From the NCBI GenBank assembly GCA_028023455.1, contig JAQFVV010000010.1:10416001-10480000 (forward strand): a stretch of DNA of 64,000 nt. Direction: 5' to 3'. Below, one piece after another: positions 5,118 to 55,200 of the stretch. The stretch is from Epiperipatus broadwayi. Its lineage: Eukaryota; Animalia; Onychophora. The notes under the pieces are model-generated. The model was not told where the DNA came from, made no database searches, and worked only from the letters and a program-made list of their open reading frames with translations. Positions within the stretch are counted from its first letter, which is position 1, and every line of letters starts with the position of its first letter. A program made the position numbers and the translations under genes.

Positions 5118-6230
5118 ATGGCAAATCCTTTCAAATCATAACAGATCATAAGCTGTTACTGTGTATACTAGCAAGTGATAAGCTAACTCCTGATCATTTG
5201 AACCTGAGAATGCTATGATGGAGGAATATACTAGCAGTATATGATTAACAACTGGTATACAAGAAGGGAAGAGAAATTCAGCATGCAGATGCATTGTCCA
5301 GAAACCCCGATAGACGGGAACCCCAAAATCATGAAATAGAGATCAAGTATATAGATTCTATGCAGTCTGAAATTTTCAACAATGAAACAGTGGGAAAATG
5401 GATGAGGGAAGATAAAGGATATGGGCTGCTAAAGAACTGAATTAGGAATGGCTGGCCAATAAAGAAACCACAAAACATGGTACCGCCTTTTTGGACCAAT
5501 AGAAATGATCCGTCTTTTAGTAAAGGTTGCATATTAATGGAAGACAGAGTAGTCATACCATTGGAAGAAAGTCCTAAACTTGCTACATGAGGGACACCCA
5601 GGAATAGTACGAGCAAAAGCTTTAGCTCACAACTATGTCTGGTGGCCAGGAATAACACTCGATATAGAAAATTATATTAAGAAATGCTCAGTGTGTCAAG
5701 CACACAGCAACATGAAACCAAAAGAATATATACCCTGGCCCAAGGCAGGGAAACCATGGCAGAGACTCCACATGGGCCATGCCAGCTCTATTAATGACCA
5801 GATATTGTTAGTGTTGGTTGATGCATATTCAAAATGGGCTGAATACTACATCATCAAAAATAAGAGTGCACAAGAAACAAAACTACTAAAAGTGATATTT
5901 TTATGTCATGGATTACCAGAAGTAATAGTCACTGACAATGCCATGGGATTTATAACACAAGAGATGGAGGAATACCTGAACAACAATGTAATTAGACACG
6001 TGCATGCCCATATCACCCAGAGTCAAACGGCGTCACAGAGAAGGTCATACAAACAATTAAAAAGGCAATTAAAAAATCTCCGAACTGCATTCAAAAAATA
6101 TTACATGAAGAAATGCTGTATCAACATGCAACACCATCTACAGCAACAAACAAATCGCCAGTGGAGTTGTTGATGTGCAGGAAACTGTGCATCAAATTAG
6201 ATATGTTATGACCAAAACATGAGCAACTCC
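5118..6230 (+). pseudogene. RNase H C-terminal tail and integrase, degenerate
   Basis: FQIITDHKLL...HADALSRNP; HHCC region LHEGHPGIVRAK...CSVCQ; core motifs VDAYSKW and VIVTDN (ORF 5580-6173). Confidence 0.9.
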
Positions 6231-17200: not shown

Positions 17201-17489
17201 TTGATAACCTTGCTAACTTATAACTAGAATATTTACACTCTTCCTTTAGATTCAGGAGGTAAATAAACTATTATGAAAGCTGTCACTTACTTTGCTTTAC
17301 ATCAAAGATTATATTCTTCAAGCAATTAATGCTTTTGTCTCTGACTAAAAATGATTAACAACTTTTACTTTAAACATCACATGACCACCACTTCTTATGC
17401 TTGTGTATAACTTTAGCTTGCTGGGTGTGGCAATATATATATAGTGAGTTTTTGCCTGTTTTAACAACTTTTACATTACCTTATACTTA

Positions 17490-22200: not shown

Positions 22201-25200
22201 TAATAAATAGTGTTTATCTAAACTATTTTAAATTTATTAATCTAGATTATATAAGGGTTTTAGTTCAGATATTAATACTCTATATATGTAAAAATTGAAA
22301 ATATTACAATTTTCCAAATATTTGAACAGTATAATAAGATTCTTTTGTAAAGAGCTATAGATTTTGAATATAATCTTGGATAATAAATTAAAATAAATTC
22401 GCTTTTAGTTTAAAATAGTTCAAACAAATATATTTCAAGATGATATAATTTCAGTTTACAGGATTTATTTTTGATATTTTGCTTCATTACATTATCGCTG
22501 AAAGTTATCTATAAAAATATAAAGAAAAATCCTCTTAAATATTACCATTTAAATCTATAAAACTAAAAATCTTTTATTTGAACTTTGTAGAAGAATCTTA
22601 TTTGATTGTGAAAATGTTTGGGAAATTACTATATTTCCAACTTTCTGTCACTCATGTAAATATTAATGTCCGAATTATAACTCTTATATAACTTTGAAAA
22701 ATAAGTTAAAAGTTGATTCATTTTTAATTTAAAATAGTTCAGTTAAATACTGCCTACTAGATGCATAATTTCATTTTACACTATTTTTTACTCTTACTTT
22801 AGTTCATTATAAAATTATTTATAAAAGTACATAAAAAAATCCTATTAAAAATATCATTTAAATCTTTAAGACCATGATAATCTTCTCTTTAAAATATATC
22901 TCTTATTGGGAAAAATGAAAAATATTTGAGAAAATTATTACACATAAAACATTAATTGTCTGAAGTGTAATCCTTGTGTACTATTGGGTTATAAGCTGAA
23001 AATTAATTTACTTTTAGTTTAAAGTAGTTTAAGCATGATGGCATCATTTCAGTTTTCAATGCTTATTTTTAATTGGTGTTTTACTTCATTACATCATAAT
23101 TGAAAATTATCGAAAAAAATTTGGAAAATGTGGAAGAAATAATAATCTTCAAATGTGCATACTATATTAAATAATTCTTTAAAATTCAATGTAATATATT
23201 AATCAAACAAAAAATGAATTATTATGGTATATGCATTTAAAGGTTAGTATTTCATAAGCATCACATATTCTCAGTATGATATATTTAATAGTTATTAAGC
23301 CACTAAACATCACACGATCATTATTTCCTATGCTTATGCAAGCTGTTAAAACAGTAGCAAAGTCTCCATACAGTAGTTCCATTCATTGTAAGCCATAATA
23401 ATCAATGGATGCTAAGTTTGTGCATAAAATCCCTTACTTCTATTCCCAGACTAGTTTCTAGCTTGTGGAGCTTTCATCAGTGAAGAAGAACACTGCACCT
23501 ACATCTTTAGATTTAATACAACCCTCTCTCAGCCACCTTTTACCTATTTAGATAAGCTAAGAGCCCAAAATGGAAAGCACAAATAATGTTTTCACTTCAA
23601 GCTAACTGGCTTGTATAATCATAAATATCAAGCCCCAATTCAGTATTTATACATTTTGTTTTTTTTTTTGTTCTTCCTGTGGGCAGGATTGGTATTAAAT
23701 CACTAAATATCAAATGATCACCATTTCCAAAGCTTACACAAGCTGTTAAAATAGTAGCAAACATTCCATACAATGGATGCTAGAAGGTTTGTGCATAAAA
23801 TTCCTACCTAATGCCTATTCATCCAATATCACAAAATGTATAGATATTTAACTGGGGTCAGATCTGTAAGACTACACAAACTAGTTAGCTTAGATTGAAA
23901 ACATTATTGTGTGTTTGTTTTGGGCTCCTGGCTTTATAATTAGGTAATATAGAAAAAAAAGGTGGCTGCCGGAGGATTGCATTAATCAAAGATCCTGTTA
24001 CAATGCTCTCAGATCCAGGACCTCTTACTGATCCAAAGCCACAAGCTAGAAATTAGTCTGGTGATATTGGGTGAATAGGTACCAGATAGAGATTTTATGC
24101 ACTGTGTGATATTACTATACTGAGAGTTTGCTACTGTTTTAATAGCTTGTGTAAGCATAGGAAATGGTGATCATGAGATATAATGCTTTAATACCAATCC
24201 TGCCCATAGGATGATGGTGATTATTATTATTAATAAATCAAAGACACTAAAATATATAGATACTGGACTGGATTCAGATCTGTATGACTATATAAACTCC
24301 TAGCTTTATAGTTAATTAAACAGATAAAAGGTGGCTGCTGGAGTGTTGCATTAGATCTGAAGATTTAGGTGAAGTGCTCTCAGATCCAAGGCTCCACTGA
24401 TGAAAGTCACAAGCTAGAAACTAGTCTGGAGATGTTGGATGAGTAGGCACCAGATGATTACTATGACTTGCATTGAATGGCTCTACTTTATGGAGAATTT
24501 ACTACAGTTTTAATATTTGATAGTTGTTGTTTATTTATATAATAACTACATTTAAATTTATAAGTATATGATTTGTTTCTATTTAGCTAATGATTAAGAT
24601 TTTATTAGATGATTTTGTAATTGCTAATTTTGGAAAAATAAGTAATGAAATTATGGGCCAAGGGTAAACATGTTTATGATATCTTTGATGTAAGATAATT
24701 AGCATTTGTCATCCCCAAATAGATTCTTCTGGTTTTGGAATTATGTGCAATGGCATCGAGGGATATGCCAGCTACTGATCAGGTTTTTTTGAAACTAAAG
24801 ATTTTGTCTTGGGCCTTTTTATTTCATTGTTAATTTTCAGGTATTTGCAATTATGGTAGCATTTAAAAGAATTTTAGTTTAATTTGCTAAATAGAAAATA
24901 TATTAATACTTTAATTAAGTAGTATATATATATATATAATAAGAGCAGTTCCTTGCTCTCTTCTCTACTACCATTTATTATAAAGTTGAGTAATCATTGA
25001 TTACTATATGATAGTGCAGTCTGGTGATGGGGATTAAATTGCATTGACATCTTGTAACCACTGATTACTCACACTTATAATAATTTATACTAAAGTAGAG
25101 AAAGAAAACTGCTGCTGTTTAAAAAATTACAATAAGCTGAAAGAATCAAATAATGTTGTGCGACAATCCATATGTTATATGTATACTTATTTATACACAG

Positions 25201-28200
25201 ATAAATATTTTTTGTTAGAAAAAAGAAAGAAGAACTTAGAAAAACAGAAACTATTGTTGAAAAAACTCCTAAAGTAAGTTCTCTAAAATGTATATATATT
25301 TTAAATATAATAATATCTTAAAGAATGTTTGAAATTGTATTTTAATAATATATTTCTACTTTTGGGTATTCTTCTGTGTATGTGTGTGTATAATAACACC
25401 TCACATTGAATGGTGCTTCCTTAGTGGCAATAGGCTATAGTGATACTTGGTAGTTTAGCTATAGTGATTTTTTTGTTGCAGATTGCTACTCTGTTACAGT
25501 ATTTAATATGTTTATCTGAGGATTTCCTAAATAAGGTCAATATATTGTACATTGTATTCTATATACTTAATATTTTTTTTATTAAGTAAACTATTAATAT
25601 TTCCATCTAGATTTTATGCTAAAAAGAAAATTATAAGCATCATACATGAATTTTTTTAAATTCAGTTACATTATTTTAATATACATATATTTTTAACTTA
25701 CAATATTTATATAAACTATATATATGGAAATTGCACAAAACATATAAACTAATTTTATTTCTTTGTTTATTGTTTAAGAAAAAAAAGAGGAGAGATAACC
25801 TTTTATTTATTTGCAGAAAAGAAAGGGGAATAATAATATAATTTAACAATATTGAAAAATGGTATGTTTCTCTACATCACAGCAATAAAGATTTACATTT
25901 TTTTTTTCATAAATCATGTTACTCTAAATTGTGGATTGCCTGTTATTATTTTCATTTTGTTATAAATGTTTAATCATTTTGTATTAATAAAATAATTAGT
26001 GAAATAAGAATAATTAATACTGTGTTAATAAAATGATAATAATACTTTTAAATAACTTTTGATTTCCATTATTTGTGGCAATAAACATTCATGAATGGAA
26101 AAAGGATCTTATTAACTTAACTATGAACTTAGTTAATTTCCAGGGTCTATCTCTTTTCTGTCTTATTATGATTTGATTGTATATGTCACACTGTGTTAAT
26201 AATTATATATATATATATATTCAATGTGATTTCCATGAATTTAGAAATTGTTTTTCTTATTCCTTATTTTTGCCTGAAATAATCATATCTATCTTCTTTT
26301 TAATTGTATAATTTTATTTTTGCGTTCAGTTTTTTTACCTGTATAATTCTCTTCAAAACATTTTTTTTTTGACTTCTGAGAAAAAGTATAATGTATTTTT
26401 TTAGTATTTTTTCTTTCATATTCTTCTTTATTTTGAATTTCTCCACTTATTTTTGCATCCCTTTTCATATCTACATTTGTTTTTTTTTTTAAATTTATAA
26501 CTCATTCAAAAGTAAATGTTTAATTTGTCTCATTCACACTTTAATTTTTTTAATCTCAAAATAAACTTATTACTTTATTCAAAGCATGTTTTGCTATTGC
26601 AATTCTTCATTTAGTTTTCATTTTGATCTATGAGTTTTGTATTATTTTATTTAAAGTACTTTTAATTAAATCTATATAATAAAGCATACAGGATACCAAA
26701 TGAACTACTATACTTTAGGGTTCTAGGATATCCCTGAATCATAAACTATAATTGGTAACAAAATGAAGATTTTATTCACATTAAGTGGCCACTTTTAACT
26801 TTTATGTAGTATCCAAGCTAAGAAATCTGATATTTAAAAAATTTTAAGGTTTTGAACACAGATTATACAGATAGTTATACGGGCTTCATATTTCACAAAC
26901 CATTATATCCCAATGATAATAAACAAAACTAAAGCATCTTATTTAACAATTGAAGTAACTCTGCTGGTATCTATATAGTAGCAGAAGGTAAATAATCTGA
27001 CAATTGTTGTGAAAACTTAAATGGTAATAAAATTGATATAAAAAACAATAAACCTATTAGACTTGGTGATGATTTTAAAAAGAAAGTAAGTCATTCACTA
27101 GTTAGTATTTTGGTGACTATTTTCAGTTATGCTGTGGCCAATATCAGATTTAATATGGAAAAACCGGACTTTCCATTTCATCATCATGCATAATTTCTGT
27201 TTGAAGTAGTAATTTGGAATGTTATAACATAATGATTGGAAAAGTAGAAAACTTCAAAAGAGAAATGGAGAAAAATATATAAATTCTGGGAATATTTGGG
27301 GAAAAAAATGAAACAGTGGAGATAATTTTCATAGTAGAAATATACTCAGCAGCCTAAAATAGACAAGGGAAATCAGACTGATGATAGATCTCATCCTATT
27401 GGAAGCACTTGGAACAAGCCGAATAGATTTGGACTCAATTTGAGAGACAGTCATAGTTAAACATGTTTGACTTTTATAGATAAGAAAGACTTGTTATAAC
27501 ATAAACCTAATTTGAAATTCTACCAAGGACCCTAATGTATACCTGTAATAACTGGTGACTTGAATAGAAGTCAAATTGAATTCATAATGATATGACAAAG
27601 GTACACTAAAATTACTGATCTTACATTGAATGTGGATTCAGACTTAATATGTTCAAGATAAATACAAGACTAAGACTTAAGAGAACAGCAAAGTAAATGA
27701 AATAAATAAAATTTAATCTAGAAAAGCTTAAATTACACATGTCTAACTAAATTTTAGAAATATAAAAAATATTCCATAGGATTAAATGAATCACTAAAAG
27801 ATATAATTTCAGAATATAAGACAACAAAGCGAATTGTTTTTAGTGCTTTACTTTAGGGGAGAAACAAGAAAACTTTGGATAGCATAAGTCATTCTGAGAA
27901 AAATAGATGAATAGTAATAATAAGAAGTGAAGAATTCTATTATTGAAGAAGGAAGAGTAAAATCCAAGCAACATCACAATGAATCTGATAATTGTAAATT
28001 GGCTGGAAAAAAATGTATAAGTGTTTAGACTTTTAAGTATTATTTTGAAATCTAGTTGAAATTATGATCGCTGTGTTTTAACTTTTTTTTCGGAAGCTTA
28101 TTTTATATTGAAATTAATTTTCCATTTTAGTTTTTTTTTTTTTTTGTAGTATTTTTTGATTATAATTTTAATTTATTTAATTGTAGTTAGAACCCTCAAG

Positions 28201-31200
28201 TTCTGAGGAGGAAGAACCTAGTTCATACAATCAGCTTTTGACTTTGTTGTCTCAAAAGAAAAAATCCAAAGGTTAGATAATAATGTTTATTATATTAGGT
28301 AAAAAGATGTTAGTTGCTTATATTATTTTACATGTATTCCTTATGAATAAAATGTACAATGAAAATTATTGAAAAACTTAAAATTTGCGATTTTTAACTT
28401 TTCCAATAAGTTTTTTAAATGGATAAAGTGATTAAGTATCTTCGTTATCTAATTAGATTATTTTTAACAAGAACTTTTTACTAACTAATATTTATCCAAC
28501 ACTAAGTTTGGAAAATTTGTGTAAGAAAATAAAAAAAGTTATGTCATTTATATTTTCAGGAAAGCATATATGATGGCTTCTATGTTATGAGACTGACAGT
28601 TTTATCAAGTGACTTGTTTTTTGTACATCTAAAACTGATCATTAAATGATTTTTAATACCACAGTATTCATGAGAATGAGTATATTATAAGAATGATAGT
28701 TATGAAAGTGTTATATTTAATGTTTTAACCAGATTTTTCTGATACTTATTCATCCTATTTTCTCCACAATAAGAAAAATGATCACATATAGCAAAAAAAG
28801 ATAGAAAAACTGTTATCTGTGGAATTATTACATTTATAACCATTAAAAATATTGTCACATATTCTTTCAGTAGGATAAAAAATATTTGCTATATTAATTA
28901 TTTTTCTCTTTTGTAATAGTGATCTATAAGAATTTGAGTTAGAATTTATTTAAAATGATTCTAAAGCACAAAGATAAGAGTAGTAATACTTTGTTTTAAG
29001 TTCCTACTAATATCTGAATCTATCCAACCATCTCTTATTTGCAATAAATCACTTAATAGATCTTTTCTTTAAATCTTCATGTAAACTTTCTGATCCAATA
29101 TGTTAGTGACTATTGAAACATTCTTTTTGTTCATGTCCTCTGGCAGTTTTCATTAAATGCTTACTATGTAATGGGGATTTAATTTTAGAAATCCTCAATA
29201 GCACAGAAAAATTTTCTTTTTAAATACAGACAGTTATTTCTGATCATTTTTTATTCAAAATTTATAGTATTTTATAACAATTTCGAGCAACTTATCACAT
29301 CAGATTCATCTAACCTGAAACCAATTCCTATTAGAATTGCTGAAAACATCGTTATACTTATCAAAATACTGAATACTTATTTTTTTCAAGACATTTATTT
29401 ATATTACTTTCTCAATTTTTTGCTGTTATCTAGATAATAGAAGAATGAAAATGAATAAATATTATTAACTTTATATTAATTACACACTAATTATGACTTT
29501 CATTTTCAATGTAAGCAATGAATAAAATCATTACAGACATTTAGTGGCCTTTCAGTGGTTCATATAATTGTTTTATGGCTAATTGAAATTTTTCTTAAGG
29601 AGTATACTAGATTTTCATTGACTCATCCTGCTATTCAAAATTAATAATTTGAAAATTGAAACTTTTTTTTTTTTAACATTTTGTAGTTGTATGTCTATGC
29701 CAGCTAGATTGTTTGGTTATTATACATTTGACCTTAAGCTGGTAACGAGGTATTTCTATAACCTCAATTAAAAGTTAACTCCACTCACCTTTGACCATTT
29801 GGCAAAAGAATGTTAAAAATAATAGGTATTACTGTCTTCCTTTTTAACTGTAATTATTTACAGTAGTCGCATCTTTTTTCTCATTCAAAACTAGTTAAGT
29901 TTTTGGAATTGGAAGAAAGATGATTTAGTATAATTTTTTTTAAATTTCAACTTATGAGTTTTGTTCGATATATTTTTTTAGTAGCAGCTCTTTTATTGAG
30001 TATTATTAAGGTAAATTATCTTTAACTTTTTTGATTTTTTTTTTTTTAAAATTGGGTAAATATCTTTTGTTGACTGAAATTGAAACTACTAATAGGATAT
30101 ACCTCTTTTTTCATGGAATAAGTATGGATGGATTTTGAAATGGCAACATAATCATTTCTTTTTAGGTAACTTCTTTCCAACATATTAACAGTATTTTTAA
30201 CTAAATTTTTGTACATTTCTTTAAATGCATTTTTTGAAAAGGTAAGTGTTTATATTAAGAGACACAATAGACAAATATAGAAAATTAAAGCTATTTGATC
30301 ATCCAAAATTTTATATATATGCTTAGTTTAAAATTGAATAGGTGCTTATGATTACATCATCTGTGTTCAGTTCCAATAAATAATTTATATTATGTCCTTT
30401 CAAGCATTTTTATTTTTTATGAAGTTTAAAACACTTAGACCATTTTTTCTCTGAAAATAACTCATCTTTTTTATCACCTGCTCTTATGAAAATATTATAA
30501 ATGAACATAACATTATTTCTTAGCTTATTGACAATTGGACAATTGGTGACTGAAAAATATTGCTATGTATGATTCTTTTATATATTAATTATAAAAAAAA
30601 TTTTTAAGATAGCTTGGAAGAAGAATTCTGTATACTATTGACAGCATCCAACTAATTCACATCATTGCATTTTAAAGCCACCATTTAAACAATTTTCATT
30701 TTATGTCTGATGATATTATAATATTGTATTTATCCATTATCTAATATAAAGTATTGAATGTCTTTAGAAAAATTTAACTTTATTTAAATTTTCAAATTAC
30801 ATTCAACTGTTAGTAATAGTACACAGGTTAGTATATGCACAATGTTTTGAGAAGTATTATTCTCCTCTCTTTTTCAGGTGTTGCTGGTTTGACCAGTGAC
30901 AGTACTAGCATGGGAGTCGAATATGGACCCTTAGATTTTTGAATATTGAATTTTAAGATAACGCTTTAACCGAATCATCCTGCCAAAGGTAACAATCATG
31001 CTTATCTATAAGGTTCCCTACTAATTTCTCCACTTTTTGCTAAGAACAAAGTTGATTAATAGTTTTTATACATTATGTATAGTCACATTAGGTTGACTTA
31101 TAGGATTGTTCATCATTGTCATGTGAACAACTTCTTTGAATTTTCTTCTTTGTGCCTTTTCCTCCCTATCACTTATTTTTGTATTTTCACAATTGAACAC

Positions 31201-34200: not shown

Positions 34201-37200
34201 GAAATTAATCTAATGATATAAAGCAGATTAAAAAATTATTATTATTATTATTTAATATCTTTATATAGGTGCTGTTAAAGCTGCTGGCTATAGCAAATAT
34301 TTCTTACAAACTCGATTTCTTGCACCATTCAATATCTTGTATATTTATAAATATTTCAGAAATATCAATGATTCAGAGAAGTGTAATCTATGGATAGAAA
34401 AGAAAATTTTAAGAAGTTAGTATTGTAGAACTCTGATTGGAAAAGAATGAGGGAAATAATGAAGTAATCTGTTTAATGTCTTAAAGATTTTAAACTCATC
34501 AGCTATTTGAAGAAGAAAAAAAGTATTTAAACAGTTCTGCAGATGAATATTAGATTAATTTTTAATTTAATGTATAAATCCTAGCTATAAATTGACTTTC
34601 TATTTATTTGTAGAATGGATTGGTTATCTCTTGAAAAAGAAAACATTTTTTATATCCATATATTTTCTCTTCGTTTAGAAAATGATCTATTATTAATTAT
34701 GTAATTTTAAGTCTCTAAACTATTTTTGTTTAATGTGCAATACTTTTAATCAAAATTTTTATGTTAATACTTGTTGTAAAGTAAAATTTTAAATATATAT
34801 ATAACTATTTTCAGATAAACCAGATTTATTATATGAAGATTCTTCAAGTGATGACACTGAAGATCATGAAGATGGTGATTCTCAGATCGAAATTGATAAT
34901 AGTGATGAAGATGATGATAATGAAGAGGATGATGAAGTTGAAATAGATGAAGATGATGATAATGAAGAGAATGATGAAGTTGAAATAGATGAAGAAAAAG
35001 ATGAGATTGATAATGACGATGAAATTAAAGAAAATGATGAGATTGAAGGTGAAGAAGATAATATATTGGAATATTTTGATGATGAGGCTGAAGAAGATGA
35101 TGAAGATAATGAAAGTGATGAAATAGATGAAAGTGATAGATCGGAAAATGATGATAGTAGTAAAGATAATACTGATAGTGAATTAGACAATGAAGTTGCT
35201 GAAAGTGAATTAGAAAATGAAGAAATTAAAAGTGAGTTGGGGAGTGAAGATAGTGAGGATGTTAATGAATCTGAAGATGGAGATGAATTAGAAGATGTTC
35301 AAGATGATTTTGAGACCGAAGAGAAAGATGATGGTAGTCAGAATGATAATAGTGAAACTAAAAGTGAAACTAAAAGTGAACTTGAAGATGATGAATCAGA
35401 AAATAGTCTGGAAAATGAAACTGATGCTTCTGATGTAATGGATGATGATCAGAATGATGATAGTGAAGCTGAAAATGAATTTGAAGATGATGAAGCAGAA
35501 AATAGTTTGGAAAATGAAACTGATGACTCTGAAGAGGCTATTTCAGATGATGAAACAAACATGCAACTGAAAGATAAGACAGTGGATAAAAAAAAGAAAA
35601 TAATAAATATTTTAAATATGGAAGAAGCTTCAGCTCCAGAAGAACTTCAGAAGCAAGGTATGTAAAAATGTATTTTGGTTGAATATACTGTTTCTTTAAT
35701 GATTATTAGCACATTGACTGCCAAGTAGTATTTTAGTAAACTCTCTGCATAGTATTCAGGAGTACAAATTATCCTAGTTGGTGATTTTTATATAAATTAG
35801 TTGTCATCAAAAATGATAATTCAGTATTTTTTTTTTTTTAAATGTAATATCGTTTTTGAAAAAAGTGATTTATATGTAGCAGTAAAATTTAAAACTTTAA
35901 AAAAAAAATTTTAAAAAATATTATATTGTAGTAAAGATTGTTTTTGAAATTGCCACACAAAGCAAATAGAAAATAATATCCATATGTGTTGAATTGTTTT
36001 TTTACAATTTAGATTCCTATATTATTATGTATTCAGAGTCATTAGAATTAGAATTATTGCACAAATGGGTGCTTAGAATTTTAGAATGTTAAGTACACAA
36101 GAAAAATTGGATAATCTGATATACAAATGAAATGGATAAGGTTGTAGAATTCTAAAACTAAATTGAATGGTATAAGAAAAGAATTTGAAATTTTTGTGTT
36201 AACAATAGACCTATTGTGATAGATGTTGTCTAGGATCAAAGCTAAAAAAAGTATTGATTCAAAATTTTTGATGACAATTAAATCAGACTGAATACTATTC
36301 TATAAGATATAAAAAAAATTGTATTGATTCAAAATTTTTGATGACAATTAACTCAGACTGAATACTATACTATAAGATATTGTAATTGTACTGTATATCA
36401 ATTAGCAGACATGATAATATTGATGAAATAGAGATCATATGATGAAATTGAAAAAGAAAAGGAAATATAATGATAAAGAGGATATAACTATGGTATCACA
36501 AGGAAAACAAAGCAAAGCATAGAGCATTATATGATAGATCTGAATACTATAGCAATAATGAATATGCTATTTAAAAATAATAAGAGAAATGGAAACTTAG
36601 AAAAGTTTCAGCATTTCACTTAAACTTTGTATTGATCCACAATTTAATAGTTGTAGAATTTAGATTAAACTTTAAAGAAAGTGAGATGAGAAAGAAAATA
36701 GATCAGTGATAAGTTGACAAAATTTTAAAGAGAAGTAATAAATCATAAAGATAGGTACTATAAAGTTGTAAATTTTAGAAAATGGTGAGAAATATTCATG
36801 GTAAATTTAAGGAAATGTAGTTTGTACTGATTATTCAAAAAGCATTTTATTCTATAAATATTTCCATAGAGTTTAAAACTTTAGATTACCATGATATAGA
36901 ATCATGATATTGTCCTATTCTGAAGTATATCATAATGCAATAGCGGAAATTATATATATAGTAACACTAAAAAGATTGATAATGATAGCGATGTAAAACA
37001 GGTTTATTTCATATTTCCAATTAAACAATAAATTGGAATGTAACTATAAAGTAAAACAAAATGAAAAGCCACAAATTCTCATCAGTCAGCATTTGACTAA
37101 CCTGGTGAGGATTGTTTTCTTCTTTGCTGTTTCTTGGAAGAAAATTGTTGGATAGACTTTTGTCTTGTAGTAGGCTATTTGAAACTACAATTAACATTTT

Positions 37201-40200
37201 ACGAACATTAAGTTATTAGCTGAAAAGAGATTAAGGAAAGCTGACAAATGGGAAACTGCATTGATCTCAATTTTCAATCCTAAATCATTGGTAGACAAAA
37301 ATCAGAAAATGATCTAGCGATGAGAATTAAATTGCACGACCATCTGATTACTGCTGATTTCTCAAACTTAAAATAGATTTGTTTATCATATGTTAAAAGA
37401 ATTGAGCAATATATCATTAATTAACATAATCAAATTAGCAAAGAAATGTGACAGTAAAGTTTATTTTAGGAAAATAAAAAGAGATCAAAGAACTGAAGCT
37501 AAAAACTGGAAATAAAAAAATTGAAATGTAAATATTAAAGTTACTAAAAGTATGTATAGAAAGCTTAATATTATTGCTTTAAGAAAAAGATTGCAAAAAA
37601 TAAATAAATGATATGGTTAAGATATGATTGGATAAAACAATTTATTTAGGAAAAACAAGTGGCACTATTATATGGAGAGTTTTGCCTGTTTTAATAACAG
37701 TTATGGTGATCATGTGATGTTTAGTGATTTAATACCAATCCTGCCTAATAGGATAGTGGTGACTATGGTTATTAAAGAACCAAAGATACCAAAATGTATG
37801 GGTACTGAACTGAGTTCAAATCTATATGACTACATAAACTAATGAGCTTGGATTGAAAATATTGTGTTTTCAATTTTAGACTCATAGTTTTGTAGTTAAG
37901 TTGAGATAAAAGATGGCTGATGGAGGGTTGCATTAGATCCTAAGATCTAAGTGCAGTGCTCTCAGATCCAAAGCTCCTCACTGCCGAAAGCCATAGGCTA
38001 GAAACTAGTCTGGGGATATTGGATGAGTAGGCACTAGATAGGGATTTTATGCACAAGCCTTTTGGCATCCATTGATTATTCTGGCTTGCACTGAGGGGCA
38101 CTACTATATGGAGAGTTTTGCCTGTTTTAATAACAATCTTATGAGCAAGCCATAAGAAATGGTGATCATGTGATGTTTAGTGATTTAACACCAATCCTGC
38201 CTAATAGGATAGTGGTGGCTGTGGTTATTAAAGAACCAAAGACACCAAAATGTATGGGTACTGAACTGAGTTCAGACCTATATGACTATATAAGCTAATG
38301 AGCTTGGATTGAAAATATTATTGTGTCTTTAAATTTTAGACTCATAGTTTTGTAGTTAAGTAAAGAGGTGGCTGTGGGAGGGTTGCATTAGGATATTGGA
38401 TGAGTAGGCACTAGATAGGGATTTTATGCACAAGCCTTTTGGCATCCATTGATTACTCTGGCTTGCACTGAGTGGCAGAGTTTTGCCTGTTTTAAAAACA
38501 AGTTATCAGGAATAAAACAAGCTAAGTCTGGGAAATTGTTTATTAAAAAAATATGTGTATCCAAACTATAGTATGTAATCTTGAATTCATTATATGATAT
38601 AGAAGAATTATAATTTTTTCCTCCATACACTTAGGTATAATTTTTTCCTCCTCATATAAGCAAAAAAAAAAAAATTAAGTTCACATAATGTTAACTCAAT
38701 ATAATTAAAGACCAAATAAAATTTGAATGATTACCAGAGACTCAAGAAGCACTATGGACATGGTTTTTGTTGCCGGGCAATTGCAAGGAAAGTATCGGGG
38801 AAAAAATATTTATATATTGCTTTTATTGATTTGATCAAAACATTTGTTAGTTGAACAGATTTAAGGTATTGATTGAAATTAATTGGTTGATCAAAATTTA
38901 TTTTTATTATAGAGTTTCTACATAATACAATAAGTCTGAGAAATTTGATTAACCAGGGATGTGTACTTATTCCAACATTGTTTTCAAATTTTATGGCAAT
39001 TATCTTTGGAACACTATACAGATGGCATAATAGAAACAGATCAAGATACCATACTGGTTTGATGATAGAATTTTTAATTTGGTTCAATTAAAAGAATAAA
39101 TCAGAACTTGTTGAATTCTGGATTTACAATATGTTGATGATTGTGCTATTTTTGCCTTTTCCAAAGACAATTTATAGAATATACTTAATATTTTGAATGC
39201 AACATTTAGGGACTTGTTTAATAATTAATGTTCAAAAAACTCAATTAATTTATTAACCATTGAGGAAGAAAACCCCTCAGTAACATTCAGCTCGGATTGT
39301 TATCAACTTAAGAATGTAAAACTGTTTAAATACCTTGGTAGTTTTTTAAGCAGAAAGGTGGAATTAGATATTGAAATATAATATAAACTTCAAAGTGCTG
39401 CCACTGCTTTTAACAAGTTAAAAGATAGAATATTTCATCACAGTGAAAATTCTACTGCAATATATTAGCTGTATATAGAATTATTATTTTATCTAATTTA
39501 TTGTATGGAAGTGAAATTTGAATACTATCAGTGCAATATAAGATTATTAGAAAAGTTTAATTTAAGGATGCTCTGTGAAATTTTAAAAATACAGTGGCAA
39601 GATTAATATGTTTTCAACTTGGTGGATGTCATGTTATAGAATCCACTATTGTAAAATAACATTTTCACTAGATAGAACATGTAAAACAAATGAACAATGC
39701 AAAACTTTCTAAAATGATGTTTTATGGTGAACTTGAACAAGGTTTTCAAAGAAGAGAATGAGCCTATCTACATTATAAGGATTATCTTATAACGATGTTA
39801 ATGAAGTGCAATGCCAGTTGTTTTCATTCTGGAAGATATGGCCGAAAATAGAATACATTGAAGAGGTATAATTAACCATATTATTGAAGTATTTTAGAAA
39901 GAAAAGCTTCCCACTGAAAAAATTTAAAAAACTGTACTGTAAAATATCAAGTAAACAGAAAAATGGATCAATATGTTCTATATGTAGATGTATCTTTGAT
40001 TCATAGATTAATTTGTATAATCATCACAAAACTCATTTCTAGATTAGTTCTTTTCTTTTTGATGTTAGACCGGCCATACTTATTTACGAGTGGCTGCTAT
40101 ATGTAATAAATAATATTTAAATACAAGTATATTGTCTATACTGAACTTAAATGTAATTAGAAGGGATTTGAACTCAGTTTTTCAAGCTCCCTACATCTAT

Positions 40201-43200
40201 CCATCTTACACATGACCACATACATGTGAAAAAGATAAATGCTCTCCAATATATGCATTTCATGCTGAACCAGCAGTCATCAGTTGATCCAGATCATTAT
40301 CTTTTTCACATTTATAATCAGTGATCAGTTTATAATAAGACAGCAAATCTTCAAACTTTAATGGATGGCTTCAATTTTCTCCACTCTCCATCTTGTTAGC
40401 CATCCATATCATTGAAAATCTGATAATGGAGTACTCAAAGCCCTTGCTGATGTCCATATTATTGTCATATCAATGTTGAATTTAAGTCATTCTGACCCTT
40501 CATGCATAGGACCTTAATATGTCCATTTAAATACACGGAAGAGGGATGGGTAGAATACAGGCTGAATATGTAATATTTAAATACAAGTATATTGTCTATA
40601 TTGAACTTAATGTAATTAGAAGGAATTTGAATTCAGTTTTTCAAGCTCCCTACATCTATCCACTCTATCTTCTACAAGCGATACACATGACCACATATCT
40701 AATTACTATAAGTTCAGTATAGACAAATATACTTGTATTTAAATATTACATGTTCAGCCTACATTCTGTTTGTATCTCTTCTGTGTATTTAAATGCACAT
40801 GTTAAGGCACTATACATGAGGGATCAGAATGACTTAAGATCAACTTGGGTATGACATAATAATCAGCACGAGTTTTGAGCAGTTTATCATGAGATTTTCA
40901 ATGCCATGGATGGCTGAAGAGTTGGAGGGTGGAGAAGATTGAAGCTTATCCATTAGGGTTTGAAGAATTACTATCTTAATATAAACTGAGCACTGATTAT
41001 ATATGTGTGTGGAAGTTAATGATCTGGATCAACTGATGAGTGCTGGTTCAGCATGAAATATATTGGAAATGATTAATCCTTTTCACATGTATGTGGTCAG
41101 GTGTATCGATTGTATAAAATGGAGTGGATAGATGTAAGGAACTTGAAAAACTGAGTTCAAATCCCTTCTAATTATGTTAAAGTCAATGTAAACAATATCC
41201 TTGTATTTAAATATTGCATATCAGCCTATATTCTTCCCATCCCTCTTCTGTTTATTTAAATGGACATATTACGGTCCTATACATGAGGGATCAGAATAAC
41301 TTAAAAGTCAACATGGGTATGATAGTAATATTGACATCAGCAAGGGCTTTGAGCATTCCATCATCAGATTTTTAATGATATGGGTGGCTGAAGAGTTGGA
41401 GGGAGGAGATGATTGAAGTCTATCCAAAAAGTTTGAAGATTAGCTATAATATAAACTGAACACTGATTATATATGTGTGTGTGAGATAATGATCTGGATC
41501 AATTGATGAGTGTTGGTTCAGCACGAAAAAAATTGGAGATCATTGATCTTTTTCACATGTATGTGGTCATGTGTATTGATTGTATAAGGAATGGATAGAT
41601 ATATGAAGCTTAAAAAATTGAGTTCAAATCCCTTCTAATTATATATATATATATATTGAAACAGATATGTTGTTTTATATATTCTGAAGTTTTCCTCCAT
41701 TTTACGAGTATATAATTGAAAATAAAGGCTGTCACAGTTAATGAGTGAAATTTAGAAAAATAGTGATTTAAAATCAGTTTTTCACTCATGTTATAAAAAC
41801 CAAATGTGTGAATTCAAATTCTCTAAGTAAAAAAAAAACGAAAATCAATATTTAAAATCTACAGTTAAAAATTAAATGACACATTTATTTAATGAATCTT
41901 TAACATTAAAAATTTGTGGTTTCCAATTAAAATGTTAACAATATAATGTATTGTTTTTGTTGGAGCTGTATGTTTTCCAATTTAAAGCACAGAAATGTTG
42001 TAATTAGTTCATCAAGAATGATAGCGACACTTTCTTGCCTTAGACAAAAGTAAGTTAACACTTTTTCATGTTGGTTAGCATGGGTGAGTTCAAAAAAAGG
42101 ATATTGAAATGCACCGTGGTAAGATAGAATAATATAAAAGAGGAATCGGACAATTTGGGGCAGTTGTTTGATTGTGGTAGTTACTTCACAGTAAATTGCA
42201 GTTTAGTTTTCAGTTATTCTACAAAGAAGAGTTTAGATAATCGGACCAACTAAGTTTGGAGCCGTCGTTGCCATAAATTAAATAAGTGCTGCAGTAAAGA
42301 GAAACCCGAAGTTACCATAAAACTGTGAAACAGTTTGTCAATATGGTAAATGCTAAAATGTCTGTCTAGTAAGGAATAGTTCACTCTCCTTCCCACACCA
42401 TGAAAGAAGTCATGAGATAGAAATATGCCTAAGTGGTCACAAAAAAAATATATAAACCATTCAGCTCTAAAATAAATCTCCATTTTAATGTGAAGATTTT
42501 ACCAGCGGTAAAACATCATACATAAAGACCATCATGGACATTTAAAAAGGTAATGAACTTCTAAATGGTTTATTGAAACCTGTTTCATTAAGATTTACAT
42601 AATTGTGTTGTGATGTAATGATGTAAATTATGTTAAGGAAGGAATAGAAAATATTAAGCATCTGTTACTTTAATGTAAATGCTTGAAAACAGAAAGGGCA
42701 CATATAATGAAGTTGTGGAAGAATAAATATAAACTAAGTGATTATACAGAAAGTCAGTTATTGGTTTTTATGTTGGGTTTAGGAAAAGATGAGGGGGATT
42801 TAGATATAAAGGCCATGGAGTTGACAAAGATTATATTGTGGAAATGGGATGGATCAGAATAGAGAAAGTAAGATGGCTAACAGGTTTCTCTTCACATAGT
42901 GGCTGAGAAATTCCTGACTCTGTATAAGGAGAAGTCACAGTGCATTGCATCACATATGATTTTGTAAAAAAAAAAACATTTTGATAAGGTTCCAATAAGG
43001 AATGAAAACCAGGTTGATGTATTAAATATTTATTTTATGTATAGAGAGTTGTCCATTTCAATTGTGTTTTAAACTGATTATTTTAAAATTTATTAATATA
43101 TATATATAATTAGCAAGAGCAGTAACACAGGCTGCTTTAAGATAATGATAATTTTCTGGGCTAGATTCATTTTAAACCAATATCATATTGTTTACTGAGA

Positions 43201-49200: not shown

Positions 49201-52200
49201 ATTGTCTATTAATTTTATATGTCAAAAACCTGAGTTTTTTTTTATTGTATATAGATAGATAAATCTAGTAAGACCTAATAATGGGAAAAGCTTCAAAAAA
49301 TGATGGAATTATTATTGATATTTTAATAAAATAAAAAAGTAGAAAAGTTATTGTTCACACTATATATCAAAGGACTTAATAATTAAGTCATATTATATTT
49401 GAATTGATAAAACATTGATCATAGTTCACCAATCCAAAAGTTTTGATGTGACTGCTTGAATTAAGAGAAAATAATGCTAACCAATGCTACATTATACAAG
49501 GTTAGATAGTGATACATAAAATAAATGTTTTTAATACATGGCCACTACAGGTGAGAATCAGCTCTTTACAATTGAGGTAGCTGTATGTAATTGGTAAAAT
49601 TATCTGTTAAGGGTATTAGATGACCCACCTTTCGATGTGCTTGATGGTGCATATACCAATTACACAATCGTGGGCTCGAGCTAAGCTAATAACTGTTTTA
49701 GCAGGTGCACAAATTTGAATAGTTTATCATAAAAAAATTGTATTTTATTTTAAAAGAGAGATGTAATGTCTGCAACAAGCACAAAAAAAAAAATGTACAA
49801 TTTTAATATAGAAAGAGAAGAACAATTTTTCATGCTGGTAAATGCAACATGTGTGTGCTATATATCTCATACAAAGATATCAATTCCAAAAAAAAAAGGA
49901 AATATGAAGACGTTTTAAAACTATGCAAGGAAGTTTTGGCAAAAAAAAATTTCCATTAAAAAGCAAATTACAGAAACAACTGTTAAAAGAATTAATTTAA
50001 GTCATAATTTACCAGCCAATAGTCTTATTTTTTTAAACCCATTATTCAATCTAAGGCTGCAACAGTTGCATCACTTCATGTGATTTACGTGTTGATAAAA
50101 TATAAGAAATCTTATGCAGATGGAAAAATGATAACAAGCATTTCTAGAAGCCAGTGATTCATTATTTGATTCATTTAAAACAAAAATGAAATTATTTTCT
50201 CAATTAAGGACATTCAACTTTCCTACAGAACTGTCATGCATGCCACAGAAATGATAAATTCTGATCTAGTAAAACAACTAACTGAAGATATAACTAATTG
50301 TATGTAATTTGTTTTTTTCTTACAGTTTGATGAATCTCCAACATATTTAATATTCTTTAGTTTTATATTTTATTAGAATGATTTTTAAAGATGTGAATGT
50401 AGAAGAAGAATTATTAACAATAATATCTTTAAAGAAGAAAACACAAAGTGAAGATGTTTATTGCATTTTCTAAAAATATGTAGAGAAGAAAAAAATTCCA
50501 CTTTATAGAGCTGTAACAATAGTAACTTGATAGTATGTTATCGATGACCAGAGTAATCAATGGATTTTTGGCTATGTGTACTAGAAACAATGATTCCCCA
50601 GATTTCCTTGCATTATTTCACAGCAGGCCTTCTGTTGTAAAATTCTAAATTTGTATTATATTATGGGTATCTGCATGAAAATTGTGAACCTATTTGAATT
50701 AAGTCTTCAGAGAAGAATATTTTAGGCTCAATTAAAAGAATCTGAATCTGATTATGTTGATGAAATGTTATATCATGTTGAAATTCATTGCTTAAGTCAA
50801 AAATTCAGGGATCTATTACGAGAATTAATGATTTTTTAAAGTTAATAAATAAAATGTACATTGAATTTAATGATCATGTTTGTTTGATGGATATAGTATT
50901 CATTATCAACATAACTATCCTTCTTAACAAATTTAATTTACAATTTTCAAGGAATTGGATGTGTTTTTATTTTTTTTAAAAAGTTAAAATTGTTGTCTGT
51001 TCAATTTATGAAGAATAAATTGAAATTTTTTTTAAATATTTCTGATGAATTGGCAAAAAATGGAAGTATGTTCGACAAAAATAAAAATTATAATAAGGAA
51101 ATAATTATTCATTATTCCAGAATTGAGATATGTTCCAAGAATTTACTAAACTAGAGCCAATAGTTATCTTTATGAGATCCATTTGGCAGTGTTGATGCGA
51201 AACTAATAACTGAAATGATAAATAATAGACTTTTTTTATCTATGTAGGAAAATGAAATTCTCCTGCTAATGACATTATTTTACAAGCACACACATTACAA
51301 TCTAATAATGGCTTTTAGAATCTAATGGATGAAGAAAAGTACTTAAAAAAGTTGCATTAAATGTAATATTTTTTGGTTCTATCCACCTAAGTGAGTACAT
51401 TTTCAACAATGAATATAATTAACAAAGGCAAAACTCCCCATACAGTAGTGCCACCCTGTGCTAGTATAGAGATGGTGATCATGTGATGCTTGAATATAAT
51501 TAAGTCAAAATCCTTTTCCCATCTCACAGAAGATTATTTAAAATTCTGTGCAAGAGTAATATTAATAATTATAAACTTAAATAGTTAAGATTGATGGACA
51601 GCATACAATGGAAATCTTTAACAATTTAATAAATTGTTATGCTTCTACTTGAAACTTATATTTTATATTATTTTTTTTTTGTTATACATTGAATTTTTTG
51701 ATAATAAATTAATATTATTTATAATAATTGATATTCGCTATACATCACATGATAACAATTCCCTGTGCTTACACATGCTGTTATAACAGAGGCAAAACTC
51801 TCCATACAGTAGTTCTATTCAGTGCAAGCCAAAGTAATCAATGATGCAGGAAAGTTTGTGCATAAAATTCCTATCTAGTACCTATTCATCCAAACTCCTC
51901 AGACTAGTTTCTAGCTTTCATCAGTGAGGAGCCTTGGATCTGGGAGCACTGTACCTAGATCTTACAATCTAATGCACTCCCCCAGAAACCACTTTTTACT
52001 GTTTTACTTAACTATAAAGCTATGAGTCCAAATTGAAAACATAACGTTTTTATCACTTCAGCAATCACCTTTTACCTTTTTAGTTAACTAAAAAGTCAAA
52101 AGGTGGGTTCTGGAGGGTTCCTCACTGATGAAAGCCACAAGCTAGAAACTAGTCTGGGGATATTGGATGAGCAGGCACTAGACAGAGATTTTATATACTA

Positions 52201-55200
52201 ACCTTCTTGCATCTTGATTACACTGTTTTGCCCTGGGTGGCACTACTGTATGAAAAGTTTTGCCCCTGATATAGTTGATAGTCCATAATACTTGGAGAAA
52301 ATTACAAGTAGCCCTTGCCCTGCAATAGTCTTCCTGTATTAAATGTGCAAAATAATGCAATAGTAATTAATATTGACATTTAATAAAAGTGAGAAAGAAG
52401 ATATTAGAAATTCAGATGTATCAATCTTTTATCAGTTTAATATAATATTTTTACTATGGTAATTATATTTTGTCTACAGTGAACTTTAGGCTCAAATTTA
52501 TTAAAAGTACAAACTGCATTTAAAAGTTGTTTTAGCACAGTGGATCGCATCTAAGTATTGAGAGAAATTATAGAAAGGATCGATGAATATGAGTTACCAT
52601 CATGCTTTGGATTTATAAATTATGAAAAGACATTCAATTTTAATAACATTTCCACAATGATTAAAGCTTTGGATGATCAACATATGGCCAATAACAGTGA
52701 TTAGATTTATATGATGACACTAAGATTATCATTGATTCAGGTAAATGACAGGATAACTCCATATCTCCAAAACTTTTTACAGTAGTTTTACTAAAATATT
52801 TTGTGAATTAAAATGGGAAGCTAAGGGAATAAAAATGTATGAATCTTATTATTTAGATTCTACAGATGTAGTTTTTTTTGCAAATAATACATAAGTATTT
52901 CAGGAAATATTGCAATAGTTAAAAGATGAAAGTAAGAAAATAGGTCTAAAGATAAATGCTAAAAAGACTAAAGTAATGTTTAATAGATTTTCGCAGAAGA
53001 AAATTAGAATGATAATAAGATTATTAGTACAGATTGTATCATAATGGATGAAATTAATTATCTGAGACTTGGACACATAATAAAAGATCAATACAGAGAT
53101 CATTCAATGAAGTATAGAGATATATATTGTAACGGTATAAAATATGTCGTTACATTAATTTAAGATTAAAATAAAAACTAAGTTCGTAAATAAAAACTAA
53201 AAGCTAAAAAATTAAAGAGTTGTTAAACGTGTATATGTATATATATTCGCACAGATGCAAAACTTTAAAAATTATTTTCTTTTTTAAAAAAAAAATATAT
53301 ATTTGAACGTACTTTTTTTTAAAAAAAGTACAAGATCTAAAGATAAAATATTTTTGTAAATGGAAATGATTGTTTTATAAATTAATTGAAAAGCAAACTA
53401 GCCCTTGGGGCTCTTATAGAAAAAAAGGTCAGTTGAAAGATATAGATAAGAGAATAAAAAATAAATCAGATGTCCAATATAGAAGCAGCAATGGAGGCCC
53501 GGACCATAATGGAAATTATTGCAACAAGAAACGATGTTCAGTGAATCCGGAGGAGTACTATAAAAGGAAAAATATTGAAATTAAGTGGAGTTCCAGCTTG
53601 ATTTTTGTGAGAAGAGCGATAAGACGCACTTGTTGCTCTCTCTCACTTATTTCAAATAAAATGACTGTAATACCAGGATTGAAACAGCTTAGGCCTCCTC
53701 CAGAACAACAGACCGGACTTCAAATAGAGACGTCGCGGGAATTGTCACCAGGAACCGTGATTCTCCTTCTGTAAGCCATGAACTATAAAATTTAAAAATA
53801 ATTAAAAACTTTCGTTCAAGTTTTTAATATTCAGAACCTAAAATGAACTCTTATCTGACTTTCAAATTGATAATTAATGTTTAGATTTTATACATTTAAG
53901 TTTAAAAAAAAAAAATCATTTCCATTTTTATTTTTTTTTATTTCTATTAATATTTATTTGTATAAATTATTTAAATGCATTAAATTTAAGTTGAGTATTG
54001 ACGCTTGCATAGATTCGTTCACGTTTAATTATGTTTTTGTTTTCATATTTGATTAAAATATATAGACATTCGGTAAATAATGATATCTTACGTTGAATAT
54101 CTAAAATGTATTTATTCGGATGTCTTTTTAGTTATTGGTGTCAATGCGGCATCTTATGAATGCCATTGGGTTTCTTGTGAATTCCCTCTGCAATTACATC
54201 AATGACTTTATATTTTGATCATTTATGTTTATTTTGAAATGTTATTGAGCGTGTAATCTATGTAGTCGATCTATGTTCAACATTAAAAAACAAACTTCTA
54301 TAAATCCATCTGTGCGAACTTAGATAAATGTTAAATTTAAGTCGGGCATGAATGGCTATATAGATTTGTAAAGTTATATTAATTAATTAGGGGAGGTTAA
54401 TCTTAGGTTATTTGTTTCTTAGTTAAATTAGGTCAATGGATTGGATATATTGGTGTAATTAGTAGATGTAGTATGAGGTTCGCTACGGGCAGGATCTCCA
54501 TTATACGCCGCACACCCCTTTTTGCCTATGGAAGGGTATAGTAAGACAGAAAACGCAGTCCCTTCATATGGAGATTTTTTTTTTTGTTCTTCTTGCCGAC
54601 AGATGTAGCATTCCTGTTTGGTTGAGAGTCAATGTCTTCTCTAACTAAGCTGTTCAGATGTACATTCCTGACAGTATGGTATTTTGTGCTGTTGTATTTT
54701 TATGCTACATTGAATACATCAATGTATCAGATGGATTGACGCTGGTTTGACTGCGAACTTTTGGCCTAAGGTTAAATAAGGGATAGAATATTTTCTTTTC
54801 AAATGCAAATCTATGTAGTTTATTCATACTCGACAATCTTAAAATAAATATAAAATTCATCTGTGTGGATGATTTAAAATCTTAAAATAATAATTTAAAT
54901 TAAAAGAATATTAAAATCTAAAATAATAAACGTTATTCCTCAAATTTTAAAATGATTATATATGTGCGTAAATAAATGTTGTTGTGTGTTAATTACTGGC
55001 AGTGGCTTTTATCTTTTTATATTTAAGATACAAATTAAACAAGTTATATATATTATCCCTGCGTCTCCACTGAGCTAATGACTTGGGCTAACGGTCTAAA
55101 TATAAAATAAAGTGGGATCTTAACAGCGCATATCTGCCTACTCTATAAATTTTCCAGGTTGAAATAACCTGGTGGCGCCTTGTAGTGCAGATTACGGTAA

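Follow-up and report, generated by a model that had tools for sequence, protein, structure and literature searches.

A 64,000-nt stretch of the genome of Epiperipatus broadwayi (GCA_028023455.1, contig JAQFVV010000010.1, positions 10,416,001-10,480,000, forward strand; hereafter the window) holds three loci and two fragments of a repeat family, here called family A, whose copies bear the motif of a type-I hammerhead ribozyme (HHR). The window has a GC content of 27.7% and belongs to an assembly of 5.6 Gb; the family A unit measures 436-466 nt, with a GC fraction of 0.37-0.39. An initial annotation of this DNA had grouped the three loci and the fragments as one non-coding family, and both parts of that claim hold: BLAST with a single unit as query (window:37658-38093) recovered all of them (loci at 23293-24455, 37658-38506 and 51778-52235; fragments at 17427-17468 and 51418-51454), and no open reading frame (ORF) longer than 68 aa overlaps any of the three loci. 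The six HHR-motif copies that it had listed, including degenerate ones near 24022 and 37976, were all visible in the sequence. ARAGORN, run on the window in search of an RNA polymerase III head, found no tRNA. The family A features of the window are given below, sites A and B being two 3'-end positions that are described with the genomic insertions.

17427..17468, plus strand: extremely 5'-truncated fragment, terminal region only
23295..24513: locus 1, one head-to-head insertion of ~1.2 kb (BLAST and sequence reading); target duplication ATTTAATAGTTA / ATTTGATAGTTG, 10/12 identical, read directly from the sequence
23295..23830, minus strand: minus arm of locus 1, ~1.2 units; 3' end (left) at site B
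23437..23492, minus strand: HHR copy with intact core and helix II AGCU/AGCU; helix I eroded, its outer half deleted and its inner half weak
23832..24513, plus strand: plus arm of locus 1, ~1.6 units; 3' end (right) at site A (...CTACAGTTTTAA)
24012..24077, plus strand: dead HHR copy, core CTGATCCA and GAAAT
24383..24445, plus strand: best-preserved HHR of the window, intact core, helix II AGU/GCU, helix I CUCCA/UGGAG plus AUCCAA/UUGGAU
37660..38507, plus strand: locus 2, an insertion in single orientation with 1.9 tandem units; target duplication AGGAAAAACAAG / AGGAATAAAACAAG, read directly from the sequence
37965..38029, plus strand: dead HHR copy, core CUGCCGA, A6 and N7 changed
38094..38470, plus strand: second unit of locus 2, HHR lost by internal deletion (unit positions ~280-356)
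51411..51490: tiny head-to-head insertion, 3'-terminal region only, its arms ending at site A (minus strand) and site B (plus strand)
51734..52270: locus 3, one head-to-head insertion; target duplication ATAATTGATA / ATAGTTGATA
51885..51942, minus strand: HHR in the minus arm of locus 3, core words intact, helix I a perfect 7 bp; presumed dead because a 7-nt deletion has removed helix II
52119..52172, plus strand: HHR at the 5'-truncated start of the plus arm of locus 3, outer helix I absent; core, helices II and III and inner helix I intact

The motif is real and occurs far beyond chance. Within the window, the pattern CTGATGA-N(4-30)-GAAAC matches six times as compared to 0.24 matches expected from shuffled sequence, and four of the six are family A copies (23454-23480(-), 24397-24421(+), 51907-51924(-) and 52125-52149(+)). 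A search of the whole genome, which the initial annotation had suggested, found 71,223 occurrences of CTGATGAN{8,20}GAAACTAGTC (CTGATGA, helix II, GAAACTAGTC) and 3 of the reversed control. The palindromic helix III (ACUAGU) that had been noticed in the window copies is thus borne by a high-copy type-I HHR family, with motif-intact copies in the tens of thousands.

The window copies all fall in the oldest lineage, the one with A-U in helix II, and with only 71-95% identity to the family majority they are old, decayed relics; unit 1 of locus 2, at 95%, is the best full copy observed. The suggestion that copies in the window are still cleavage-competent must therefore be given up, and predicted competence belongs instead to younger lineages elsewhere in the genome. 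The stem I pairings quoted for the window copies (CTCCA/TGGAG, CTCCTCA/TGAGGAG and TCCTCA/TGGGGA) are correct, and the core words do persist in all four copies described as having an intact core; however, helix II is lost at 51907-51924(-), helix I is eroded at 23443(-), and outer helix I is missing at 52119(+). Only two window copies, 24392(+) and 52119(+), keep the core together with helices II and III and inner helix I.

The family majority, AUCCAA-GGC-UCCUCA / CUGAUGA / A-[A or G]GC-CACAA-GC[U or C]-A / GAAA-CUAG-UC / UGGGGA-UA-UUGGAU, revealed the layout of the putative ribozyme: firstly, all conserved HHR core positions are present (CUGAUGA, GAAA, A15.1-U16.1 and GUC, an NUH cut site); secondly, helix I, which is open as in type I, consists of 6 inner and 6 outer bp with a 3x2 internal loop between them; thirdly, helix II has 3-4 bp overall, the older lineages having three pairs and an A.A apposition that adjoins the core; and fourthly, helix III comprises just the A15.1-U16.1 pair, capped by a CUAG loop that is palindromic (ACUAGU). 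Across 56 copies, 90.7% of helix cells are paired, as compared to 27-43% when the partners are slid, and the predicted minimum free energy (MFE) fold and dimer cofold reproduce the helices. Two copies cofold into a double hammerhead held by a 6-bp intermolecular ACUAGU helix; given a helix III of one A-U pair and a palindromic tetraloop, efficient cleavage would be expected only as a dimer. These features make up the architecture of a canonical metazoan type-I HHR and not that of the min-HHR class (Cervera & de la Pena 2014, PMC4209133), with cleavage itself a prediction. The initial annotation had called the ribozyme minimal, which does not fit a helix I that is extended and carries an internal loop. 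The unit between two successive cut sites (L076:2423-2888, minus strand) has a predicted MFE of -167.5 kcal/mol (z = -7.2), whereas shuffles of it reach -121 +/- 6.5 kcal/mol; such strong predicted self-pairing would fit the retrozyme circles described earlier (PMC7229834).

Genome-wide variation in the HHR domain is consistent with its helices having been preserved. Exact counts of CTGATGAA[A/G]GCCACAAGC[T/C]AGAAAC, which covers helix II pair 10.2-11.2, gave 9,396 copies with A-U and 25,960 with G-C, and the single variants G.U and A.C numbered 978 and 1,238. The A-U and G-C lineages, both very successful, thus differ by a compensatory double change, with the single variants at the level that decay predicts. 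A third lineage (CTGATGATGGCC...; 6,962 copies) has U-A in place of A.A at 10.1/11.1. Median identity to the majority of the own lineage rises from 0.894 (A-U) through 0.939 (G-C) to 0.973 (U-A), which gives the order of age, oldest first, and, together with the pairs themselves, indicates that helix II strengthens as the lineages get younger. Within the 63-nt HHR domain, these helix II changes are the sole lineage-defining substitutions: three successive lineages have kept every core base, and whatever changed in the domain left the helix II pairs in place or added to them. Dividing the A-U lineage into an older and a younger group was also tried and set aside as weak, since the fixed differences number just 8 and are confined to unit positions 89-235.

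Family A extends beyond this genome. Sequencing data of 10 coded organisms from 5 studies contain 30-40% of the 31-mers of the window stretch and lack its unique flank; therefore, the family is common to several related species, nearly unchanged. In family contigs of four other coded organisms, the A6 that is mutated in the window (37984) reads A in 97-98% of depth, N7, the one free core position, reads U or C, and both the A-U and the G-C form of helix II occur. As the copies are related, the covariation represents few independent events, but all of them point in the same direction.

The insertions themselves have a distinctive anatomy. Among loci fetched from the genome by motif form (30 A-U, 10 G-C and 6 U-A), a minus arm is followed by a plus arm in 36 of 38 sampled insertions, with the 3' ends outward and the 5' ends meeting centrally at variable unit positions. 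Arms often exceed one unit in length, the end of a unit continuing straight into the start of the next. Tandem runs of 2-5 units occur (L015, L076 and L077), most insertions have fewer than 2 units per arm, and tandem copies in a single orientation are found at locus 2, L017 and L030. In L076 (G000:C1:25916500-25920500), five units of the G-C lineage stand in a row and four 466-nt periods are mutually 100% identical, which suggests either an array made very recently in one event or collapse or expansion in the assembly. The tandem organisation proposed in the initial annotation thus holds for locus 2 and for stretches inside arms, but not for loci 1 and 3, which are inverted head-to-head; what had been taken for tandem satellite arrays are single Penelope-style insertions, with head-to-head, 5'-truncated arms, one tail and target duplications.

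The outer 3' ends of the arms are bimodal, falling at two sites ~60 nt apart. Counted against the GUC cut site at unit position 353, site A lies ~119 nt downstream (~25-49 nt beyond unit position 436; ...GCCTGTTTTAA) and site B ~180 nt downstream (~80-105 nt beyond position 436; ...GATGTTTAGTGGTTTAA). The two are paired within insertions: among 33 classifiable head-to-head insertions, 30 have one arm ending at A and the other at B, in each orientation equally often (15/30), while two are A/A and one is B/B. Arm termini in L001-L030 and the window end in like words, GTTTTAA at site A and GGTTTAA at site B, and a small GGCA...UGCC stem-loop precedes site A. No poly(A) or microsatellite tail was found at the ends of the sampled insertions.

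Target duplications of 10-17 bp flank the whole compound structure of the young insertions L006, L013, L025, L063, L066 and L001, and reading of the sequence found them in all three window loci; their length varies between insertions. A target-duplication score of >=10 was obtained for 6 of 38 insertions as compared to 2 of 200 mismatched-flank controls, automatic detection being noisy with AT-rich flanks and imprecise BLAST ends, so that the clear cases were read by eye. Each window locus is a single retrotransposition event between copies of a target duplication of 10-14 bp.

Insertions of Penelope-like elements (PLEs) are characteristically strongly truncated at the 5' end and form partial tandems; an inverted copy, also 5'-truncated, lies next to them, and only one end bears a short tail (Craig et al. 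2021, PMC8557442). For one such element, PAc, Frangieh et al. 2024 (PMC11167929) found that the protein cuts both strands of the target and extends them. They also found that cDNA synthesis begins internally, at two neighbouring positions downstream of the hammerhead, the interval between which is the genomic tail. Family A resembles PAc and the pseudo-long terminal repeats (pLTRs) of PLEs in its partial tandems, inverted 5'-truncated copy, one-ended tail and AT-rich targets, as well as in having two internal start zones for the reverse transcriptase (RT) downstream of the HHR and both target strands extended; it differs in having no ORF for an RT-endonuclease (RT-EN) and in a tail of ~60 nt instead of 30-40 bp. 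The insertion anatomy is the signature of PLE mobilisation.

The genome also contains autonomous PLEs with an intact RT-EN. We counted 10,242 candidate GIY-YIG sites; all 150 that were scored pass the Pfam cut-off, and open frames reach 901 aa. L071 (G000:C12394:20942000-20951900) holds intact tandem PLEs with two 901-aa ORFs and a 3,135-bp period, in the translation of which the YVDD and GIY-YIG motifs are legible, and further long intact PLEs lie at L072-L075. A Pfam search with three PLE ORFs gave no family at E up to 1e-3, despite a GIY-YIG profile match above the cut-off.

Taken together, these results lead us to interpret family A as a non-autonomous, non-coding retroelement with a canonical type-I HHR that is copied in trans by PLEs, that is, as a non-LTR retrozyme of PLE descent, a reading to which we assign a probability of roughly 0.78. 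It is a further example of the animal non-LTR retrozymes, an already-known class for which a link to PLEs was recently proposed in vertebrates (Li, Clavereau & Pollet 2026, bioRxiv 10.64898/2026.07.22.740005), and it matches the description of retrozymes as non-coding, low-GC tandem repeats of 150-450 bp with a type-I HHR. The outline of the initial annotation, a retrozyme family that is non-coding, bears an HHR and has a predicted self-paired RNA, therefore survives, with Penelope-style insertion taking the place of a tandem satellite.

Under this model, multimeric transcripts would pair through their palindromic helix III (ACUAGU) to form double hammerheads, which would cut 3' of GUC, and a host tRNA ligase would circularise the unit-length RNA into a highly self-paired circle. 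A PLE protein, combining RT and GIY-YIG endonuclease, would bind the region between the ribozyme and sites A and B and nick both strands of an AT-rich target. Reverse transcription would then start internally at A or B, so that both target strands gain an inward cDNA arm, and copying round the circle or along a multimer would give arms longer than one unit. As a more speculative extension, which we consider distinctly doubtful, the pairing of A with B could reflect one dimeric PLE ribonucleoprotein carrying two template RNAs or units that are joined through helix III of the HHR, with multi-unit arms as rolling-circle copies. If so, the double hammerhead would be a template-dimerisation element for two-strand target-primed reverse transcription and not only a cutter, and arms with several identical units would record rolling-circle copying of a circle made by the ribozyme.

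Several observations weigh against the interpretation of family A as a PLE-copied retrozyme. The Rfam search for hammerhead models that had been called for returned no match, whether at the gathering score or with E relaxed to 10 (on 36 kb, and on 101-111-nt stretches taken from one A-U and one U-A/G-C copy), only spurious hairpin or snoRNA matches, and by the curated Rfam definition hammerhead membership fails. The A.A mismatch at 10.1/11.1, which stands next to the core in the two larger lineages, may weaken catalysis. The one PLE studied in vitro did not need HHR cleavage in order to insert (PMC11167929). The inner ends of the arms do not pile up at the cut site, which implies that processed linear monomers are not the usual template; scattered inner ends would fit templates that are circular or multimeric, or RNA left unprocessed, as has been reported for PAc. 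The initial annotation had held that core positions no more conserved than their flanks would speak against a ribozyme, and in 41 copies not chosen by motif the core is indeed no better conserved; as inserted copies decay neutrally, we judge this comparison the wrong test and uninformative on function, and compared lineages instead.

The data on RNA and on a partner element weigh in the same direction. Family A was found in 14 sequencing runs from the coded organisms, all of them contigs that are not on record as RNA and that cover the repeat, not the locus; in the four runs examined, family contigs number in the thousands and none lies on the flank that is unique to the locus, and all four runs contain joints of unit end to unit start, which tandem DNA would give as well. 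Neither family A sequence nor an HHR of its type was found in 35 PLE loci (30 with GIY-YIG matches and 5 PLEs that are long and intact), a very small part of the PLEs of this genome, from which it follows that the autonomous partner is not among the PLEs examined. The hammerheads of these PLEs are of a different type: the spacer of the intact PLEs carries the core-variant, hammerhead-like motif TTGAAAA-A-GACTAT..ATAGTC-GAAAC-GTT, and the autonomous PLEs of the genome have HHRs of min-HHR or core-variant type, whereas that of family A is canonical, with a CUAG loop on helix III.

Some of these points could equally be explained if the HHR motif were an inherited, non-cleaving passenger and the family spread solely through PLE recognition of its 3' region. 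The A.A beside the core, the Rfam result and the poor conservation of the core relative to the flanks all suit this explanation, as do reports that HHR mutants of PAc insert normally and that RNA-seq ends at its cut site are absent (PMC11167929), and that Naiad PLEs thrive without HHRs (PMC8557442). We nevertheless regard it as unlikely, though to be taken seriously: a passenger would not be expected to keep all core bases through three highly successful lineages in which the HHR domain has changed only so as to preserve or add helix II pairs, nor to vary across organisms at N7, the one core position that is free.

A further alternative dispenses with Penelope altogether and sees in family A a classical tandem-satellite retrozyme, as in coral, mussel and axolotl, that spreads through circular RNA and an RT of long interspersed nuclear element (LINE) type or of unknown type. 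The likeness to metazoan non-LTR retrozymes is considerable (PMC7229834; bioRxiv 10.64898/2026.07.22.740005): these are non-coding, low-GC repeats of 170-450 nt with a type-I HHR and tandem copies, their unit RNA is self-paired, as is predicted for family A, autonomous PLEs co-occur with them, and a PLE origin has been proposed, and unit size, base composition, ribozyme type, tandem copies and self-pairing thus all accord with PMC7229834. However, long arrays are not the typical form of family A, which lies dispersed as short head-to-head pairs; their arms are truncated, and each pair has one tail and a target duplication. Non-LTR or LINE insertions look otherwise, poly(A) and microsatellite tails are absent, and the arrays seen are short (<=5 units). 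Family A also differs in that it has no sequence link to a specific pLTR among the 35 PLE loci, and its circular RNA is a predicted one. We consider this alternative improbable.

About as little credit can be given to the idea that family A is no non-autonomous element in its own right and that its copies are truncated pLTR ends of an autonomous PLE. This genome is extremely rich in PLEs, their insertions are heavily 5'-truncated and their HHR resides in the pLTR (PMC4209133, PMC8557442). By contrast, multi-unit arms join unit end to unit start with no ORF in between, for up to five units; no ORF exceeds 68 aa, and neither the unit nor its HHR type occurs in any of the 35 PLE loci, intact tandem ones included. 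The lack of an ORF and the tandems closing on themselves argue for a separate non-autonomous element over pLTR stumps, and we hold the pLTR explanation to be improbable. A foldback or miniature inverted-repeat DNA transposon with a chance hammerhead-like word in its inverted arms would account for the inverted arms, the target duplications and the long hairpin that matches a miRNA-precursor model at 51874-52182, yet can be dismissed almost entirely, as the arms are unequal, truncated centrally and not at their ends, and terminate at two different sites, many copies are single-orientation tandems (locus 2, L017 and L030), and the target duplications vary in length.

Other known hammerheads offer partial parallels. 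Amphibian satellite-2 and the axolotl HHR_Amex1 (PMC7229834) share with family A a helix III of a single A-U pair with a palindromic tetraloop and a very high copy number; their sequence is unrelated, and helix II begins with an A.A mismatch in the older lineages of family A. The Schistosoma SM-alpha ribozyme, in the Martick & Scott 2006 construct, reportedly runs from a helix I 5' strand through CUGAUGA, a helix II hairpin, GAAA, a short helix III and a UC cut to the helix I 3' strand; its helix I is said to contain an internal loop, as in family A, and the element to have been described as resembling short interspersed nuclear elements. Its helix II and loop sequences differ from those of family A, for which the Rfam model Hammerhead_1 gave no match.

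With more than 70,000 motif-intact copies, family A makes up a measurable share of the 5.6-Gb genome. The anatomy of its insertions in itself provides unusually clean in-vivo evidence for the proposal that animal retrozymes ride non-autonomously on PLEs, through the two RT start zones, the single tail per insertion, the priming of both strands and the target duplications, and the three lineages form a natural series of helix II strengthening over time. What family A adds to the known class is the 30/33 A/B rule, this lineage series of helix II and the arrays of identical units. For annotation, its loci should be masked as one retroelement family and not as genes or regulatory RNAs. The family is also a likely source of many false miRNA-like hairpin calls: the arms of locus 3 (51874-52182) match the plant miRNA precursor MIR7533 at 41.8 bits (E = 3.5e-05), a match that we regard as spurious because the head-to-head arms form a long hairpin.

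A second, unrelated, non-coding family with a hammerhead lies at window 40091-41650, with a unit of ~470 nt. Its motif, CUGAUGA-GUGCUGGUUCAGCAU-GAAAU-A, is found at ~41033-41060(+), with a reverse-complement copy at ~40257-40290, and its minus arms are followed by plus arms, a Penelope-style layout like that of family A. A motif near-identical to it occurs less than 1.5 kb from GIY-YIG matches in L037 and L043. At window 59700-59900 there is a head-to-head mini-insertion of ~190 bp, the arms of which start just upstream of a min-HHR-type motif, CUGAUGA-A-GACUG..CAGUC-GAAAC, with a longer helix II and an unpaired A at its 5' end. Elsewhere in the window, positions 34900-35670 are coding-like and rich in GAT/GAA repeats, with an Asp/Glu-rich ORF of 199 aa that has no Pfam match, and positions 5580-6173 hold an ORF fragment with integrase zinc-binding H2C2 and rve core domains, the remnant of an LTR-type retroelement.

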